Of a DNA stretch of 64,000 nucleotides, positions 14,657-38,733 are shown one piece after another. Every line of letters begins with the position of its first letter. The first letter of the stretch is position 1. The notes beneath the pieces are model-generated. The model searched no databases and was not told where the DNA came from. It was given only the letters and a program-made list of their open reading frames with translations. The position numbers were made by a program, and so were the translations under genes. The stretch comes from Syncephalis fuscata S228 (Eukaryota; Fungi; Zoopagomycota): the NCBI GenBank assembly GCA_025786725.1, contig JAHLTZ010000016.1, forward strand, positions 310,001 through 374,000, in the 5' to 3' direction.

Positions 14657-15614
14657 ATGAATAGCGAATTTTCTAACGCAATGATTCAAAAGTCGCTTGA
14701 TACGACGACAGAGTCGGTTGATTCGATACTGAACAACGTACTGTATTGGTGCGCGGTAGGCTACTTCCCCGCACAGTTAGAAGACTTGACTAATCAACCA
14801 CCTGTGGAACCCATTTCGCCAAATGGTTCGCCGCTATTGCAACAGCAGCAATTCGATGGACATGCTTATGAACATTTGCACTCACATTCACATTCGCATC
14901 CATCTTGCGAGCCAGCAGCCGTCAAACTGTCGCCAACCATGCCACCGTCGCCGCTATCGATGCCTGCTTCGCCGCTGACCATGAATACCGCTTGTATTAG
15001 CTTGCCAATGATTAAGCCAATTGCGGCAGGTGTACTGCCCAGTCCACAGTCGTCGCTATGCATGGAGCAACACTGCTACTCTATCGAACATTTGGCGCCT
15101 CAATCGCTCGAAATGCAGCCATCGCTTAGTTTCGACACGACAATCTCATCCGCATCCTCGTCTTGCGACTATGATACACCAAAATTCTCTGTACAGCATC
15201 GGTGTTTATGGGACGGATGTGGCCGCGAGTTCGACGTGCAGACGGACTTGCTTCGGCATTTGAGCGAAGATCATGTTGGTCGCAGCCTGCGCGGTAATTT
15301 GTGCCTTACTTGCCGTTGGCCCGGATGCTCACGTGTGGCAAAGAAGAGAGATCACATGGTCTCTCACCTAAAAAGCCATGTTCCCTTTTGGCCATTTACC
15401 TGCAAGGTGGGTTTATTTACTTTCTCAAAATGGCTATCTGCAATTAATTTGCCGACTTGCGGCCTTTTGGAAAATAACAATTATCATCATCAATACACAA
15501 TACTAATTTTTCTTTTTTGTTTGCTTCAAATAGTATTGCGGTAACCGGTTTAAGCACGCCACTGGATTGAATCGTCATATCAATCGTCATGAAATGCGTG
15601 GAGAAACTCAATAA
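14657..15614 (+). CDS. ZF-4: PacC/Rim101-like C2H2 transcription factor with C-terminal fingers (exons 14657-15406, 15534-15614)
   Basis: [51 protein letters not shown]|YCGNRFKHATGLNRHINRHEMRGETQ*. Confidence 0.88.
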
Positions 15615-21950: not shown

Positions 21951-24349
21951 TAACTTTTAAGGCCGCGCTTGATCTTACGGGCTTTCTTTAGCTCACTATA
22001 CCTATATTTATAGTAGTGCAATATGTGAACTAGACGATAACCAGGACTGATGATGCTTTTGTTCGATCCACACACAAACACAACCACTTACATACACATA
22101 CACACCGACACATACATATTTACATACACATAGATGGATAGATGGGGTATAAGATATGGATCAAACATCAGTAACACGGTTAACATTTAATGATATCGTA
22201 ATTAAGCGCGCGCACCTATTTAAACGTGTATGTGTACTTTTCGTGACATGTTATTGATCGTCCAATCGACGGATTTCTATACCATTTCTCTCTCACTCTC
22301 TCACTTATTATTACTATTTTTCTTTTTACCTTTTTGGCCTTTAGGCAAAGCAACGAACCCAGTGCGGCTATGCTTATGTCGAAGAGGCGAGTAAAGACGC
22401 TACGTCTCTCTTTGAGCATGTCGAATGGGGCTGTACCGATCGAAAGCATCTACGACGCATTTTATTTTTTATTAATACTAAAGAAATAACTAAAGTTAGT
22501 CCATCATATTATACGGTATAATAAATATGACGTTTACATAATAACGTTGCAAATGTAACTTTTATTAATACAAGTATCTATAATATAATTATTACTATTA
22601 TACACCATTATATACTATACTGAATACAATTTATTTATTATATGATTCAATACACTTTACTCGGTCTACTTATTGCAGCATATACATTATAGCGTCGACA
22701 CCACTTATCTTATTCTTCCCGTTGTATATTCAATATATTGTATGTCATTTTATTATATGCTAGTTACATAATATTTAGAGCTGCTATTAATTTGACTCTA
22801 TATCTATTAGTAATAAATGAAATAATATATATATAATATTGCCATAATACAAATTAAATAACTAAATAAAGCATCGCACATAGAAAGATTGTAAATAGAC
22901 TAATCATTACCAAAATAAAAGATCGTCATGCTGTTATATAGTAGCAGTGTTTTTACGCAACAGCTACTAACCAGGTGCAACAACCTTATTATGAATAAGC
23001 TTTAATAGCATATAAATGATATTATTGCTGACTCCTTAATTATATGTATAAAAATATAATGATAAAACACAATAAATAGAATAGACAGTACGAGTATAGT
23101 GCGTGTATAATATCGTTTATTGGCTATATTCTTAGCATATTTTTACTGAAAATAACAGCTATTGCATTTTATGTTGAATTATGGTCGAAGATATGCGTGG
23201 CAGTATAGACATATACGTCTATCATAGAGTGAATAACATATGGTCAAAATATCTCATTCTATATTACTAAAAATATGACGCACAAAAAATAATGATTTTT
23301 AAAGTTTTAGCCCATAGTCAAGGATCCAGTATAAATGAATGGATAAAGCTAAAGAACGTCATAGCATACGCACAGTTTACATTACATCATGTTTCCAGTA
23401 ATGATCATATTAGCATATAGTAATAGTAGCTCTGTATATTTAGATAGAAAACTTTGCATGGCACACACTATAGATAACATGCTGGTAGGTGTACAACCTT
23501 ACAATAAATGATGTGTGGACTAGCACTTACACGCATGATTATAACCGGTTGATATACCATGCATTGCTCCATTCCATTCAAAACTGATTACGTTTGGTGG
23601 AACTGTCTGCGGTGTGGCCCAATATTGGTATACTGCGCTATATACAATTCGGACTATTTACATTATTTTAAGACTGAGCAGTTGGCTACATTTGTGCTTG
23701 ATCGCAATAGTTTATTATAAAGCTACATATATTGGGCGGCCAGCAATTAACATTAGCAGCCAATTAAAAATGGTTTTTATATTGATTGTTTGTAGTGTTG
23801 TAATAAAACAAACAGCTCATTCTCTAAGCAATAGCCACTATGTCGGATTAAATGAGCATGTGAACCAACCAGCGTAGTTTCATAATCAAGGAACTACGGC
23901 CAGTCTGCGTGCGACAGTACGTACCTGTAAAAAGCACAAGTTCAATGCACTAGTGCTGCTACTGTACCGTTTTTATGTGCTGTTGGAAATACTTGCAGAT
24001 ATTAGGGATTGGGATTGTTAGTGAAAGCAACTGCAAAGATATAGCGATGCATCATCACTACTTTTGTAGAATCAATGGATTCAGTTTGCACCATATGGTT
24101 CAAATTGTGTAGCATCATTGTAAAAATTAATAGATAAATTTCTATCGCATGTGTACTGGCTAATTAATATTGCCGAGCAGATTGAAGTAAAGACTGGGCA
24201 GCATGATACCACATCGTTGATATGTTGGTATACGAATGCTTCAAATCACCATGTGGATGTGCTGTTATTGGTTTACATTGTACATCAATGTTATAGACCA
24301 TACAATACAGCATGTTGGTATCTTAGTATAATCACAAATTTAAATAGCT

Positions 24350-24356
24350 TATAAAA
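24350..24356 (+). promoter_or_regulatory. Candidate TATA box of the micro-exon peptide gene
   Basis: TATAAAA lies ~130 nt upstream of ATG 24485 and is followed by a C/T/A-rich leader. Confidence 0.45.
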
Positions 24357-24484
24357 TACACACAGATAGCCAGCAGTACCACTATTTTACTCTACTTTCT
24401 GCCAAATATCTACTACTACCTACTTTGCACCAAACATACTCTGTAGTTCACTCTACTTGTTTGTCTTAACAAATTAATATCATC

Positions 24485-25222
24485 ATGAGGCTTTCCCTTG
24501 CTGTCGTCTGCATCCTCGTCGTGGCCTTTGTAGTCAATACAGCCATGGTGGACGCTAACCCAAATAGAATTCGTCGTGGTATGTTACAATCAGAATAAAT
24601 ATGTTAATAATGTACCAGCTAACATTATGGTTGGACTAATGATGGTACTAGCTCGTAAGTCTTAATTATGAACTATTGCCCCAAAACTTACTGTATACTT
24701 TTATATGCATAATAAACGCGATAAATATATGTAAATAGTCGGTAAGTTTAATTATACATAATTATTGGCGTGCTAATTGATTTTGCCTATTAATTTAAAA
24801 TGGGGTGAACCAGTGCCATTGATTAGAAGTAAGTTTAGTACAAGATTGCAAGTCAAATACTACACTGAGAGTGCTAATATGCTGAATTTCCATCAATAGG
24901 AGGTAGACTAGACTAGAAATAATTAGTTGCTTATTTAACTAATAGTGTTTATATTTAATAATCTGCATCAACAGCTGGTAAGTAGCGTTGTATATTAGTT
25001 GATTATATATTAAACATGCAATACACATTATTTATACTTAATAATCTGTGTTAATAGATTGTAAGTGGTATTGTATAATAATTAGCTATCAGCTAAATGT
25101 ATATTGTGTATTGTTTTGTACTTAATAATCTGCACCAACAGTTGGTAGGTAGTATTGTATATTAATTGTTTTATACATTAATTATATGACATATGATGTA
25201 TATATTTATAAATATAGCATAA
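24485..25222 (+). CDS. Micro-exon gene for a 43-aa secreted peptide precursor (exons 24485-24578, 24652-24654, 24739-24741, 24814-24828, 24900-24902, 24975-24977, 25058-25060, 25142-25144, 25218-25222)
   Basis: Signal-peptide exon followed by eight 71-84 nt GT-AG introns, with AG-NNN-GTA micro-exons between them. The joined sequence is exactly 44 codons ending in TAA: MRLSLAVVCILVVAFVVNTAMVDANPNRIRRALVPLIRRADFA*. Confidence 0.8.
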
Positions 25223-26865
25223 CCGGCACTTCCAAGATGTTGACATAGGTATTGTGTTTAAATTTCTAGTGCAATACACTTTAGGTATATATTCAGTAAA
25301 GAACTGGGCCATTTGACAACTATTGCTCAGACTATTTATATATCAAGTTCCATTCAATGTTCGGTTTGTTCAACTTTAATCAATGGCGCCATTATATTTC
25401 CAGCAAGTCTGTATCCAGTTGTGCCTATCTAACTATGCAGAATTGTAGTAATAAACATATGGTTCCATTTTAAATATATGCAATTAAATGATTGTAGTTA
25501 TACTTATGTTTAATTTCCATCCAACCATTAGCAAGTATTAATCAAGTAAACGTATTAATAGCAGATTTTGCAAGTGCATCACATTAACTACAAGCATAGC
25601 CTAATACAATATAGCAATAATGTTGTTAATATAGCAATTTGCGTGATATTATGTTAAACTAGTATAGTAATAATTAAAAAACATGATAAATGAGAATAAA
25701 TAGCACATATTATTGAGGCGAATAAATGGCGTAAAAATGGTTAACACTTCCTAATCAATATACAGCTATTCTTTAATATAAGCAATATTGGTGAATTAAC
25801 ACATGTAAATTGTTTTTTTTAAATCAATACTAAACTTTTTTTACTTATACTGGGAATGTAGCTACAAGATGCTATAAATAATAAGTAGTTAGAGAAAGTG
25901 CGTGGATATTTGCAATGAAATACGATAAGCACATATATGTATATGAATAAGTAAACCAAATTGGAATTTACAATAAATTAAAATGCATAACAAACACGGT
26001 TGGCAATAAATAAGTAACTTTTATCAACAGTTTATGACTAGTAATCAAATTAAGCAAATGTCATCAAGATAATCATTTAATTATATTCAATAAAACAAAG
26101 ACTTGTAATTAAATATTAATAATATATACATTTCAATAATTAATTAATTTTAATTAGGTTTTTATAATGCATAGTTTATATAAAAAATTTAAAGAAACGT
26201 AGACCAAAAAACAAATACACGGCGAATGCGCAGCACCCACCGTTGATTATGGCCAAGCGTAAACACAAACAACTACAATTAACGTAGTGTGTCTTTTTTG
26301 CTAAAATGAAAATAATAGGCAGCACACAATAATAACAATGACAATGATGATGATAATGCGATTATGATGATGATGATGATGATGTAATGTATGGTTGATA
26401 AGGGCAATATAAATGAGGATGTGGTATAGTAGTATGGTCAATGCTTATGTACGATAATAGACCACGCATAAGGCGTAGCCAAAAAGAAAACAACTATAAA
26501 AGAAAAGAAAAGAAAATGGTCAAAAGATCGGCGTAACAACGTTAAATGAAAACACGGAAAACAAAATGTAAGTCAAATAAATCAAGAAAATGGTGAACCA
26601 CCACCACAACATCGATCAGTAGCAAGAATTGGACCTTAGAAAAGGTTAAAATAGAGAGACATGGCAACAAGTACCTCTCATACTTTAAAAGATCATCGCA
26701 ATCCAAAAGGGCGACGCGTTAAATACCTTTTCTCCTACCGCATGTTGGTTCTGGCCATCTTGATTGGATGCAACATCAATTATAAATTACTATCTACATC
26801 ATTTTCTATAATTAATTCTATTGAATTAAAAATAAAATTGCATCTAAAACAACATGTTACACAAT

Positions 26866-28620
26866 TTAATAGTGCATATGATGCTGTGACTGCGGATGTA
26901 AATGCTGCTGCTGCTGCTGCTGTTGTTGTTGTTGATGATGATGTAAATGATAATGATGAAGACCAGTTGGGGAAGCAGGATGGATAGAACCATAGGCAGC
27001 ACTAGTGGTAGGCGTAATAGGTCCGTTCATAGTCGTCGACAATCTATCCGATGCACTGGTAGACCAGTGACGTGTATGAGACGGCTCATAGTGATGGGTA
27101 GCTGCTGATGGTGATGATGCCGAGGGCAATGGTAAATAGCTAGCTGAAGATGAGGCAGAACTATTTGCCGTCAATGATGGCGGTGGTAACGAGGGAATAA
27201 AGCCATGGTGTGATGGTCGATGATGAAGCATTGGCTGCGGACATGAATTTGATCGCTGATGCTGAGATGATACTGATCCGGTAGCAGCAATAGGTGAAAT
27301 AAGACCCGATGACATCGTCGTTTGATGGCCGTGTGGTGAAGGCAACGTGAGAGTGGATGGTGGATAATGGGCTGATACCGGTGTGGGTACTGGTGCTGGC
27401 AATGTGTGTCCTATGGGCATTACAGATCGGGTGCCAATGTTGCCATTATTATTAATAGTGCTGTTGTTCATTGATATCATCGCATGGGGATGCGAATTTA
27501 CCGCGGGAAGTATTGTGCCGGGTAGCGGAGACACCATACCCGATAATTCTAATCCCAGCTGATTGCTTTCAAGTTCACGTCGTTCCATATGTTTCCGTTC
27601 ATGTTTCTTTAAATCTTGGCGGCGTTTATAGCGCTTATCACACACGCGGCATCGTAGTGGCGTTAATGGTACATGAACTCGTAAATGAGATGTAATATGG
27701 TCTCGTTTGTTGGTCGATGTTTGACAGTCCTCCCATCGACAGGTTAGACAAAGATTACCACGAGCATGTCGTCCTACGTGATCATCACACAGATGCTGGT
27801 AAAGTGTCTCAGGCCCATGAAAGGTACGTGTACATTGGCGCCATCGACAATGATACAAATGCGACTGTCCGCCTTGACTACTGCAATTGTTGCTGTTGCT
27901 GCTACTATTGATGGGTGATGTACCACTAGATTCTAATAAAATAGTAGATGTTGTACCATGATTATGATTCATTGCAGAAGCAGATAACATTGAAGTAGAA
28001 TATGGCAGCTGTTGTTGTTGTTGTTGTTGCTGTCGAGCTGCTGTTGGATGATGGACAGCATTTAGGCCATTCGACATCACAAGAACCGGTGATGCAGATG
28101 CCGTACGATTGGGTGTGCTATGATAGCTATAGTTACTAGCACTTGGTAGGCTGTCTGCCGATGGATAAGGCGAGTGGGCCAATGATGGATGCGGCTCCAA
28201 CAGGGTGGACAATGAAGGTAAAGGTGGATGCTGCATTGGATGAACAGGTGACGGTGTAGAAGCATAAAAAGGGCCCGTTCTAATTGACAGAGGCGGCGGC
28301 GTTGGTGGTGTATGCGGTGTGGCAGCTGTACCCGTAGCAACGGTCCTTGCCGATACAGCAGTGGTATTTGTCGCTATAGCAGGTGGTGAAACTGAACCCA
28401 TTCGATGCTCCAAATGACTAGTAAACATCAATGGCGGTGACGGCGATGCAGATGATACTGAAGATGCCGATTTACCGCTATTGTGTTGCTGATAATAGGA
28501 CTGAAGTGGCGGTGACAATTGTCGATTGCACGGAATAGGTAAACACTTTGAAAACGCAAGTTCAGTAGGAACAACCTGCGGTTCAATAATGTGGACGGGC
28601 GACGACGACGAATACGACAT
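26866..28620 (-). CDS. pacC: ZF-6: intronless PacC/Rim101-family transcription factor, the most canonical copy
   Basis: [69 protein letters not shown] closely matches the PacC DNA-binding domain ([27 protein letters not shown]). The family assignment is secure; strict orthology is not. Confidence 0.85.
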
Positions 28621-33860: not shown

Positions 33861-36800
33861 TTATTCCTTATTTGTAGATGCAGCCTCTGGACTGGTCTTG
33901 ACACCTTCTGACGAGTCAGCTGAGGTCACGTTCGTTAATGATGCTTTTCGCGTAGCTGCACGAGCCTGCATCATCTGTTCAACATGTTGTCTTAAACGCA
34001 TGAGCAGTAAGCGTACACGTTCAGACTGTTCAATTTTGGGGTCAGCAATCTTTTGAGCTGCATCATCATCATCATCATCGCCATTATTGTTATTGCCGGA
34101 GGTTGATGCATCGGTTGCAGTAGTCGTTGTTGCCTCTTCCAAAAGTTCCAATGATTCTCTTTGAAGTTTACTAAAGGATGAACTACGAGCGCGTGCCATA
34201 CTATTTACCGTTGGCTTATCGTATCGTTTGGCAGCTCGACTTGGTTTTGCCGTATATCGTTTCACGCCATCCCTGGCCGCTACTTCTGTAGAGTTAGAGG
34301 CGGACGGTTTTGTATCTGCGGCCGATGCATTGCTCGATGCTGTGCTATCCATCGAAGGTCGACGTGTATTTTTATCGTCGGTAATTGATGGTGCAGATAA
34401 GCGCAGATTCTTTACCTTGTCCACTATCGATGATAGCATAGACGAATCAAACGAATCCTTCTTAGCATGGCCCAAATCTAGACCTTTATCAAGTCTAACT
34501 ACATAATTGGCTACAGGTGGCGGCATTGCTGGAACGAATGGCGGTGGAGATGCAGCATTTGTCTCGCTTAATACAGGGGATATTGGTTGAATACCAACTG
34601 TATTCGAAGGGAACAGACCCTCGCTAGGCGGGCTCATACACGATGACATCTGAATCTCCAGCTGTTTCGATAAATATGTTTGGCATTGGTGTAACTGTTC
34701 AAGATGTTCTGAAGATGTACTACGAACTAATGTTGCCAATGTATTGGGATCAATAATGGACATTTGTAGAAGCATGATTTGTAGTGCTATAGGTCAATTT
34801 AGCAGTATAGGCCATCGTTAATCATTTGAAATATAAATCGTTTTCATCATCAATCAATTCGCATATATTTTAACATTTGCATTAATAAAGTAAATAAATA
34901 AAGTTTAAATCCCATGAAAATAAATGTTATAGAATAGAAATCACAGTAATTATAATGATAATATAAATAGGATAATAGGATAATAATAATAATAATAATA
35001 GGAATAGGAAAAAATGCAGGTCATACGCGGAAAACAGTCAATAAAAGCTGAATAAATAAAGACACAAACAAACAAAAAATCATGACTATAAGCTGTCATC
35101 GAGAATAGAATAGCATAAACAAGAATGCTGTCTATTAAAAACGTAAAAAAACTATACCTACAACCAGTTGAACTAACTATAATGCTGTATAAACATACCT
35201 TCATACGATTGTGCACTATAGTATGTTATTAGTAGGCAAGTAGTAAAGAAAGAATACGCAAAGGAAATGAAACAAAATGCACATCAAGCTTGATATTGAA
35301 TACGACAAAAGAACGAATACGAACGCAAGCGCAAGTGTAAAAATAGACACGTAGTACATCAGCATAATAAAACACCATAATCGCTACAAAAGGGCGAGAT
35401 AAGTGAACACGCAAATGATTTGTCAATAGTTTACACTGCCGTAAATAACGAATGAATAAAAGGAGAAAAAAGAAGAAATACGGAAAGAAATGCGGAAAGA
35501 AGCTGGTTAAAATCAATATCGCTATAGAATAGAAATAAGATGGAAAGATGGAAAAAATGGAAAGGAAATAACGCTGTATGGAACACGATCGCTTATAGAT
35601 ATGCTATTCAAAGCTATTATCTATTAGTGTGTTCCGTCTATGTTTAATTGAAATGATTTAACTTATAATAAATTAAGGATGGGCATTGGCACTAGGCTCA
35701 TTTGAGCATGATCGTGGCCGAATGACAGGCAATACAGAGGTAGAACAAGCACGTCGACGTACATTACCATTGCCATTAGCACTAGCACTAGTATTGTACG
35801 GATGATGTACACTCTTGCGTAACAGTGCCCGTTGAGGAGAAAGTCGCGTCGATTTAGCACGTGGTGGTACTACTGGTGTCATACCATGACTATGACCACC
35901 AACATTGTTAATACTATTATACGAACTATAGTTATAATGATTAAATGCTGGGGAAAGTGTCGTCATGGATGGATGATAGACACGCGCCGCTACACTCACC
36001 GCCGAATAATTAGGCGCTGAATGAGGTCGCGATAAAGGCAAATGACTATAGGCCAGCTAGACATTAACGATTCATAACTGGTATGACTATAGCTATCATG
36101 ATCATCGCTATTATCGTTATTATTGAGACTATTCATAGAAGAATAGCAAACACCGCCACTACCACTACTTGATAGTGTGATAGGCTGTACTGAATTACGA
36201 GACATCAATGGAGTATGCATAGGCGCAGACATGCCAACTCGCATCATACCTGACGATAAATCAGCATTGGTGTATTGTTGTGTGGCCGCCACATTAAGGA
36301 ATTGGTGATATACTTCGTGGGCCGTTGGTTGCGGTAAATAGCCATCAGGGCCAGCACCGAGCATTGCCGGATCGATCATGTCGCCGGTAGCTGACGAGGG
36401 GAAAATGGCTTGGGTATCAGCTAGAGGTTAAATAGCGTTAGTATACAGCATATAAAGTTGCGTAAATATAACTGCTTACCATTATATTCACTAGAGGCGC
36501 TAGTGGTCAGGCCAGGCGACATGCTCGCCATAGGAATGTAGTGCTGTGAGTGCATGCCCGGTGTGGACATAGGCGACGGTGGCAAAGCATAAGCAGGCGA
36601 TAAACTGGCATCGACTGTGCCATACGGTAACGGCATGGATGCAAAATGACCAACTCCCATTACGTGATCGTAATCGGTACTGGGAGGCGATTGCATTTTG
36701 TCACGATGTGTATGCTCGTGACGCTTCAAGTCTGATTGGTGCTTGAATCGCGCGTCACATAATCCACAGCCATACGGCTTATAAGAGAGATGGCTTTTAA

Positions 36801-37041
36801 TATGTGAAATTAAATGATCACGCTTTGACTTTGAAATGGTACAATCGGCCCATTGACACTGAAGACATAGATTGCCGGTAGCATTGCGACCGACATGATC
36901 CTCCGTAACATGAATGAACAGGTCTTCGGCGTTTATCACCTGCTTGCCACAGCCGCGCCATAAACACACCTGTGGCCCATCACTTATTGCACCATCCGAC
37001 AAAGCTGGACTGCCCATAGATAATTCAAATGATGAAGACAT
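33861..37041 (-). CDS. ZF-7: PacC/Rim101-like C2H2 transcription factor (exons 37041-36480, 36420-36250, then either 34786-33861 or read-through toward ~35673)
   Basis: CLWRGC..HVTEDHVGRNATGNLCLQCQWADC..KRDHLISHIKSHLSYKPYGCGLCDARFKHQSDLKRHEHTH. A phase-1 donor GTATGA at 36249 matches a phase-1 acceptor at 34787-34788 that leads into ORF 33861-34775. Confidence 0.8.
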
Positions 37042-38733
37042 GGTCAGCAATTCAAACTAGTTCTATGGAGTAAAAGATATAAAACGACAAAGTAAATAAA
37101 ATCAATTAATCAATAGCAACTAGGTTGTTGGATAGTGTGAAGCACAGTTAAATGGCAAATGCGCGTGTGTAAATAAGGATGTGTAGAAACAAAATCAATG
37201 CGGTATTGGCCATTCGTATTTATAGAATTTAGAGGCTATCAATAGATACGCCTTTTTGATGTTACAGCTACGTCCACATTAACTCTATTCGCACTAAGCC
37301 ACAGCTACCAGTTAGAAAGTTCACTTTAGTCGTACGAATAAACGGTCAAGGCGCGTCAATAAACCGTCAATAGACCCTTGTTGGCTAGAAGATAGATCCA
37401 CCACTACTAAGCCATATCATACCATGTCATCGGTCATTTGCCATCACATCATGCATCCCACCCCATTCGCTCTAGCTCTATGATTTCCCATTAGCAACGC
37501 GGTGTGCTCGGCTCAGTTAATTATTTTAAAAAACCGGTCACCAAGCACATGTGGTTGACCACTACGCTATGGTACAAGTATCGCTCTAATGTCGCAAAGT
37601 GGATGATCAAGGAGAGTGTGTGCGTGCGTGCGTGCGTGTATGAGAGAAGGGTAAGGGTCGCCTTCTTTGGCCAACAGTGATGCACGCACTCAACGCGTGT
37701 CTCCTTCGCTCAGTTCGCCTACAGCGAGAAGGCGGCCTGTTTATTACTGCTTGGCACCACACATAGCAGAAAGTTCTACCTATAGATGACAAACCAGGGA
37801 AATAAACCAAGTCTGCTTTAGACAGCACGAAACATACATCCGTATCCACCCCGTACTCGTTAATTCACAAGTGCACATGCGTTCATACTGGCAATGACGA
37901 TAGCTTAATAAACGTACACCACCAGCAAAGGTCCAAGCAATTCGGTGTTTGTCAATTACCGCAAACCCAAGCAATAGGCAAAGCCTTGTAGTTTAATATC
38001 TGAGGCTGTTTTAGTTGCTACTAGTTAGCATAGGCTGTATTTGGAAACACTAATCAATAACAATAAACGTATATACTATGTTAGTAGAAGTCAGATGAGT
38101 AAGAGTGAAATGGGGAAATGGTAGGTGAATTGACATCATTGTCGTCACCATTATAATGACTAATGCCGATTATATTAACATTAATAAAACACTACGGTTA
38201 TTACAATTATTGTATTGATTTATCAACATTGTTATCAACATTGTTGCTATGACTTTTACCACTATTACTATCGTGATCAATAGTATTATGATTATTGTTA
38301 TCGTTATTACCAAAATTAATCATTTCAAACATGTGCTGTCCTAAGAATATGGCAGCTATATTTAGATGTTTGTATATTACATCACCTTTGCCGAATAACT
38401 CAAGGCTTCTAGTTTATTATTAGAATAGTCTTGGTCAGTCGTCCTCTCCCCTCAAACATCATCAAATCATTACTATTGACACTTAGATGATACACCAACT
38501 CATAGACAAGGCGACAAGCAATAGGGTCAAATGGTGCGTTGAGCTATTAACATGTTTGTTTACACATAGTAAACAGGGCTATACCAAGCAATAACATGTA
38601 TTGTTTCACAACCTTTTACAAGTAAAAAAATAACATCGTTATGTAACTTTTGTATAGATGTCACACATTTCCCACCATAAACACGTTGAACAGTACGCGA
38701 GTGTAAGTGTTACAATTTCTTGATTGGTTTGTT

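Follow-up and report, generated by a model that had tools for sequence, protein, structure and literature searches.

The gene at positions 24485-25222 of the window (the whole 64,000-nt stretch of Syncephalis fuscata S228 DNA analyzed here) is probably a short member of a family of secreted prepro-peptide genes, in which the product would be made from the full, ordered chain of exons and variety would be made in the DNA. A constant leader is followed by 3-nt exons in phase 1, such that each codon straddles a junction, taking its first base from the end of one exon and the other two from the start of the next. S. fuscata is a parasite of Mucorales moulds and is not known to cause disease in people, animals, or crops. 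The initial annotation had proposed a hidden gene for a secreted peptide assembled from 3-nt exons, which is supported; it had overlooked the predicted paralogues, which number about a hundred or more.

The exon blocks lie where they had been placed, with introns of 71-84 nt and a terminal exon from 25218 (Table 1), and our splicing model, with all exons included, reproduced the 132-nt predicted CDS, which encodes 43 aa with the tail DANPNRIRR-ALVPLIRR-ADFA*. The seven internal exons (3, 3, 15, 3, 3, 3, and 3 nt; six of 3 nt) are, as claimed, all multiples of 3 and in phase 1 (7/7). The introns measure, in order, 73, 84, 72, 71, 72, 80, 81, and 73 nt, and the CTAA-type branch motifs reported for several of them were seen as CTAAY or TTAAY words 10–50 nt before the acceptor in six of the seven introns examined. 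The remark that these introns match others in the window did not hold: the one ordinary intron that we located, in a KH-domain gene whose product is identical to an S. fuscata protein, is about 197 nt. A hydrophobic core found by inspection of the 94-nt exon 1 is the basis of the signal-peptide call. What had been described as an IRRA repeat makes more sense as a pair of dibasic processing sites, of which the family conserves the first as RR and the second as KR or RR. Single acceptor-exon-donor blocks gave 5 matches in the 64 kb vs. 3.1 expected, a count that is unremarkable alone; all five lie on one strand within about 500 nt.

Table 1. Features of the peptide gene (window positions) and of loci used for comparison.
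Feature	Position	Strand	Remarks
Upstream region, family-conserved (putative promoter/5' UTR)	24155..24484	+	19-34% diverged vs. paralogues
TATA-like word in upstream region	24339-24347	+	
Exon 1, 94 nt: predicted signal peptide (~24 aa) and short pro-part ending RR	24485..24578	+	phase-1 donor GTATGT
Exon 2, 3 nt, leader	24652..24654	+	position conserved among paralogues
Exon 3, 3 nt, leader	24739..24741	+	
Exon 4, 15 nt, spacer before second dibasic site	24814..24828	+	sole open phase is 1
Exon 5, 3 nt (GAG), conserved	24900..24902	+	completes second Arg of KR/RR site
Exon 6, 3 nt, first mature-peptide array unit	24975..24977	+	
Exon 7, 3 nt, array unit	25058..25060	+	
Exon 8, 3 nt, array unit	25142..25144	+	
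Introns 5-8, copies of the family's ~80-nt array intron	24903..25217	+	13-21% from best paralogue matches
Terminal exon, coding part: two bases and TAA	25218..25222	+	
3' region conserved in family (3' UTR and beyond)	25223..25530	+	end approximate
Family members without intron 1, with downstream family 3' region	G000:C2:225326, C2:244718, C58:1345, C135:96007, C350:652559		
Array-intron insert	L029:1134-1558; also L019, L023, L025, L026, L027, L049, L052, L054		same intron place
nank-like NACHT(-ankyrin) NLR genes, then about 30 codon-sized exons	L069:5275-8261, L149:5340-7900, L077:5233-7400		
Very AT-rich contigs with 3-nt-exon arrays	L092:90-1600; L058, L130, L146, L162, L166		introns about 90 nt; stop-free in phases 0 and 1

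The window locus resembles about 40 other places in the S. fuscata genome (66-78% DNA identity), and exon 1 has at least 150 matches there. The genome scan for chained 3-nt-exon blocks that the initial annotation had suggested returned 2,880 adjacent pairs vs. 1 in a reversed control, and of the places with a strict pattern for the end of exon 1, 85 continue into the intron-1 donor and 27 into another base. Several pairs of family loci are nearly identical, and haplotype duplicates may therefore inflate these counts; roughly a hundred predicted secreted-peptide genes of this build are present. Searches used exon 1, single exons, flanks, and database proteins as queries, and joined models were translated for frame checks and statistics. 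We read about 39 family loci, biased toward those closest to the window gene, with an internal-exon parser that is blind to reading frame except for a preference for lengths of 3, 6, and 15 nt; the intronless and partly intronless loci were placed by their coordinates.

Nearly all loci read have a 94-nt exon 1 and, after it, 7 to 48 internal exons, with a median intron of 79 nt. Most internal exons measure 3 nt: the first parse of the family gave 445 such exons among 478, and 471 of the 478 were multiples of 3. Members have in common a promoter region, a 94-nt exon for the signal and pro-part, Kex2-type dibasic sites, and a last exon that reads NN-TAA; TAA followed two bases in 26 of the 32 terminal exons called by a parser that favored such a layout. 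With every exon included, the predicted product (43-84 aa across the family) opens with a signal peptide and a dibasic site. One subfamily then has a second spacer, which ends in KR or RR. The mature part that follows is 4 to 45 residues long and Cys-rich, Pro/Arg-rich, or Gly-rich. As had been anticipated, gene predictors miss this layout: the JGI models of family members P0121 and P0122 follow the chain only through exon 1 or one micro-exon further. The named homologues of the leader were S. fuscata proteins only, a metagenome scan with an exon-1 profile returned no relative, and a search for contigs encoding the protein queries returned nothing. In P0138 (BDF19DRAFT_443925), what follows the family leader is a single-domain von Willebrand factor type C (SVWC, PF15430, with a score above cut-off); structured cargo is carried by this leader too. 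By eye, P0130 resembles an alternative frame of P0126-type sequence after a frameshift near the leader end. A frame-breaking exon call was met in five sampled genes, which may be pseudogenes, assembly errors, parser errors, or genes with obligately skipped exons; 2-nt exons break the frame in L020, L021, L048, and L051, where close paralogues have 3 nt.

The initial annotation took the array for a splicing-based diversification system with up to 128 in-frame isoforms. Part of this stood: no premature stop arises in any of the 128 exon subsets of the window gene, which give 126 distinct peptides. Such tolerance is weak evidence because this gene has only one T-ending exon, with two downstream partners, and skipping as the purpose was unsupported by the family statistics. 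These were taken on junctions in 30 non-redundant genes, with shuffled exon order as the control and with paralogues that are not independent. Adjacent junction codons contained 1 stop in 634 vs. 22.7 ± 3.6 after shuffling and 66 Cys codons vs. 32 ± 4, and the dependence between bases across the junction peaked at lag 1. Phase 2 showed no avoidance (41 stops vs. 36), and TGA is the phase-0 reading of three S. fuscata exons. When one exon was skipped, the junctions gave 28 stops in 599, all non-adjacent pairs gave stops at the shuffled rate (232 vs. 249 ± 22), and stop-making skips were present in 22 of the 30 genes. Since stops are avoided at adjacent junctions while skipped junctions stay at chance, selection acts on the full ordered chain and not on skipping of the schistosome micro-exon gene (MEG) type, and we rejected 128-way skipping as a design on the chance rate of stops at skip junctions. 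Even Cys counts fit the full chain as well, with 4 or 6 Cys in all eight complete in-frame products that contain Cys. The statistics argue strongly, if indirectly, that the micro-exons are spliced and translated. A generator of isoforms like the MEGs or the Tuber nank genes, with stochastic skipping of 3-nt exons as the main source of peptide variety, is quite improbable. It would be consistent with internal exons in multiples of 3, with the tolerance of the window gene, with the premature stops given by only 21 of 506 single skips family-wide, and with alternative splicing of the fungal precedent; against it, stop-making skips are not depleted in the family, in Cys genes 81 of 220 single skips alter the Cys count or give a stop, and in phase 1 each skip rewrites a codon, whereas nank-like arrays avoid phase-0 stops (0 vs. 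7.7 expected). Some skipping as noise or as a minor source is likely.

The same statistics bear on whether the arrays are coding at all. Their introns are homogenized and resemble tandem repeats, as a non-coding satellite or a set of recursive-splicing sites might, in which case the product would be exon 1 alone or joined to the last exon; but stop avoidance that depends on exon order, Cys enrichment at junctions, Cys counts that are even, and an intronless paralogue collinear with the leader micro-exons (see below) would all be unexpected, and this is hardly credible. A functional family in which the window copy has collapsed or is fading, its array down to three units and its product of little or no role, is a better proposition, albeit a rather unlikely one, and is compatible with our preferred explanation at the family level. 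At 4 aa, the mature part of the window gene ties for the shortest in a set of 26 complete genes, in which it reaches up to 45 aa, and frame-broken and insertion-bearing members are common. On the other side, its upstream region, signal peptide, dibasic sites, splice sites, stop, and 3' region are all intact, and L029 likewise has a 4-aa tail. The window gene keeps all 16 splice dinucleotides despite a divergence of 21-38% from sampled paralogues in introns 1-4; by simple arithmetic, the odds of keeping 32 bases by chance at about 15% change per lineage are near 0.006. Intact splice sites, frame, dibasic sites, and flanks despite this divergence indicate that selection maintained the window copy through most of its past.

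In the preferred explanation, an ordered full chain with variety made in DNA, we strongly infer that the selected product contains every exon in order and is secreted, and that a Kex2 cut at the RR/KR sites frees the mature peptide, which would be 4-6-Cys, Pro/Arg-rich, or Gly-rich in paralogues and four residues long in the window gene. The homologous introns of ~80 nt that flank each codon would allow unequal crossing-over and conversion, by which single residues or blocks could be added, removed, or swapped without frameshift, under diversifying selection. Array introns are homologous, about 23–25% diverged within a gene and 33% between genes. Units whose introns are 3-6% apart encode different residues in 77–88% of pairs (random: 91%), which could reflect either positive selection on the triplets or conversion that homogenizes the introns, and both act in DNA. 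Close paralogues differ by whole units or blocks (L053 has 8 units more than L050). Diversity apparently originates in the DNA, as ~80-nt units of intron plus codon are gained, lost, or exchanged. An introner inserted at every codon was considered and rejected: the units look like tandem duplicates, and we saw none in the window's other genes. A 360-420-nt insert sits in an array intron of at least eight loci (Table 1), and in four of them it starts T-rich and shows clear target duplications of 15-16 nt. It looks like an antisense, site-preferring non-LTR retroelement inserted repeatedly at the same intron site; it carries a cryptic AG-CTT-GTGAG block, and an Rfam search with it found nothing real. 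Read in this way, the retroelement-like insert with its 15-16-nt target duplications shows reverse transcription acting at family loci.

Four annotated family members are encoded without introns. The intronless P0134 (C1:523550-523882) has a leader identical at 29 of 31 positions to that of the array-bearing L020, the same eight-residue spacer ending KR that exons of 3+3+15+3 nt give, and the family upstream region at the usual distance. A plain retropseudogene was rejected because this upstream region, a putative promoter/5' UTR, is kept; its retention favors in-place intron loss via cDNA over a plain retrocopy. In a comparison limited to nearest neighbors over 31 aa, three of five intronless leaders were nearer to intron-bearing ones, one was tied, and one was nearer to an intronless one; we take the direction of change to be intron loss rather than gain. 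Some loci without intron 1 have the family 3' region 2-4 kb downstream, two of them with arrays in between (Table 1), and apparently represent partial intron loss at the 5' end. In-place loss in some copies, probably through cDNA, would complete the proposed course of events, in which the peptides have a putative role directed at the host or at competitors of this mycoparasite. AlphaFold gave a low-confidence helical hairpin (pLDDT 63) for the mature part of the intronless P0132, and structure and Atlas searches with this model found no informative match.

Conotoxins, legume NCR peptides, and fungal Kex2-processed peptides form superfamilies with a conserved leader and hypervariable cargo, and the mature peptide lies in one or few exons. 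The S. fuscata family shares with them a constant signal/pro region, dibasic processing, fast-diverging Cys- or Pro-rich mature parts, and many paralogues. In KEPs, the core peptide is repeated; here, a signal peptide and dibasic sites are present (RR at the end of exon 1 and KR/RR at exons 4-5, with cleavage predicted), and repeated core peptides are absent, with one mature peptide per gene that is unrelated to the spacer. Schistosome MEGs, the parallel drawn by the initial annotation, have micro-exons no longer than 36 nt, and sequencing has demonstrated their skipping isoforms (PMC4015677, PMC4671649). The likeness is real in the long 5' signal-peptide exon, the central symmetric micro-exons below 36 nt, the small secreted products, and the parasitic way of life; it fails in that nearly all exons here are 3 nt, skipping is not favored by selection, and there is no homology.

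The annotation also knew of no fungal equivalent, which is wrong for the architecture: codon-sized exon arrays in fungi are already published for the NACHT-ankyrin (nank) genes of the truffle Tuber melanosporum, which have tens of codon-sized exons that are alternatively spliced (Iotti et al., 2012, as cited in PMC4986451, PMC13449251). Like the S. fuscata genes, these form an expanded fungal family with tens of tandem 3-nt exons, probably tied to interaction with other organisms; nank genes differ in encoding intracellular receptors reported to diversify by alternative splicing. The S. fuscata family, in another phylum, encodes predicted secreted Kex2-type peptides in phase 1 with dependence on exon order; its tandem arrays reach 48 exons in paralogues, with six 3-nt exons in the window gene. 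Array exons of nank-like loci avoid phase-0 stops, as whole, cleanly skippable codons would, whereas S. fuscata arrays are in phase 1. No sequence similarity was found between the S. fuscata genes and the nank-like loci L069, L077, and L149, and neither exon 1 nor nine annotated family proteins had a NACHT or ankyrin Pfam match. By sequence criteria, the S. fuscata family belongs to neither MEGs nor nank genes and, on present evidence, is unlike both as an isoform generator. The literature searched, which covered few subscription journals, held no description of micro-exons in Syncephalis or in fungal secreted peptides, or of a phase-1 secreted-peptide family.

A generic 3-nt-exon pattern scan of metagenomes, in which many matches were simple TAAG-type repeats that we set aside, recovered the nank-like genes of Table 1 (donor phase 0 in L149) and yielded about 25 contigs with varied 3-nt-exon arrays, including the very AT-rich contigs of that table. 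In further contigs with varied arrays (L067, L071, L084, L093, L094, L096/L113, L100, L101, L108, L148, L153, L165, and L171), phase-0 stops numbered 0 in 260 exons vs. 11.6 expected. The L092 array precedes a kinase ORF with named relatives from Funneliformis and Rhizophagus (Glomeromycota), a candidate array-kinase link only. Two contigs (L062:14-3300 and L156:6880-9300) bear 33-45 periodic AG-GGA-GT blocks about 72 nt apart; given the MarR and MFS genes next to L156, these are probably a prokaryotic repeat array (possibly CRISPR) and not exons. The 3-nt-exon-array architecture is probably wider than published, and the scan suggests that comparable arrays escape annotation in other fungi, with arbuscular-mycorrhizal-like contigs among them.

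A broader proposal, which we hold tentatively and rate a little short of evenly balanced, is that secreted anti-host or anti-competitor peptides evolve residue by residue in the germline: codon cassettes would recombine via their homologous introns, with single residues inserted, deleted, or swapped, up to about 50 consecutive 3-nt exons would be joined unskipped, and some products would be fixed intronless via cDNA, in a system that would occupy about 1% of the genome, with similar arrays having arisen separately in several fungal phyla. Faithful splicing of dozens of consecutive 3-nt exons would approach the presumed limit of spliceosomes, and the family would supply many natural substrates on which models of intron definition and splice order could be tested. 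The layout would also be a route to peptide evolution by single-residue indels and swaps without frameshift. Secreted peptides rich in Cys or in Pro/Arg, probably a large set and mostly unannotated, make this parasite of Mucorales a plausible source of antifungal peptides.

Around the peptide gene, within 23 kb, lie three Zap1-like C2H2 zinc-finger ORFs (window positions 14657-15544, 26866-28620, and 36421-37050).
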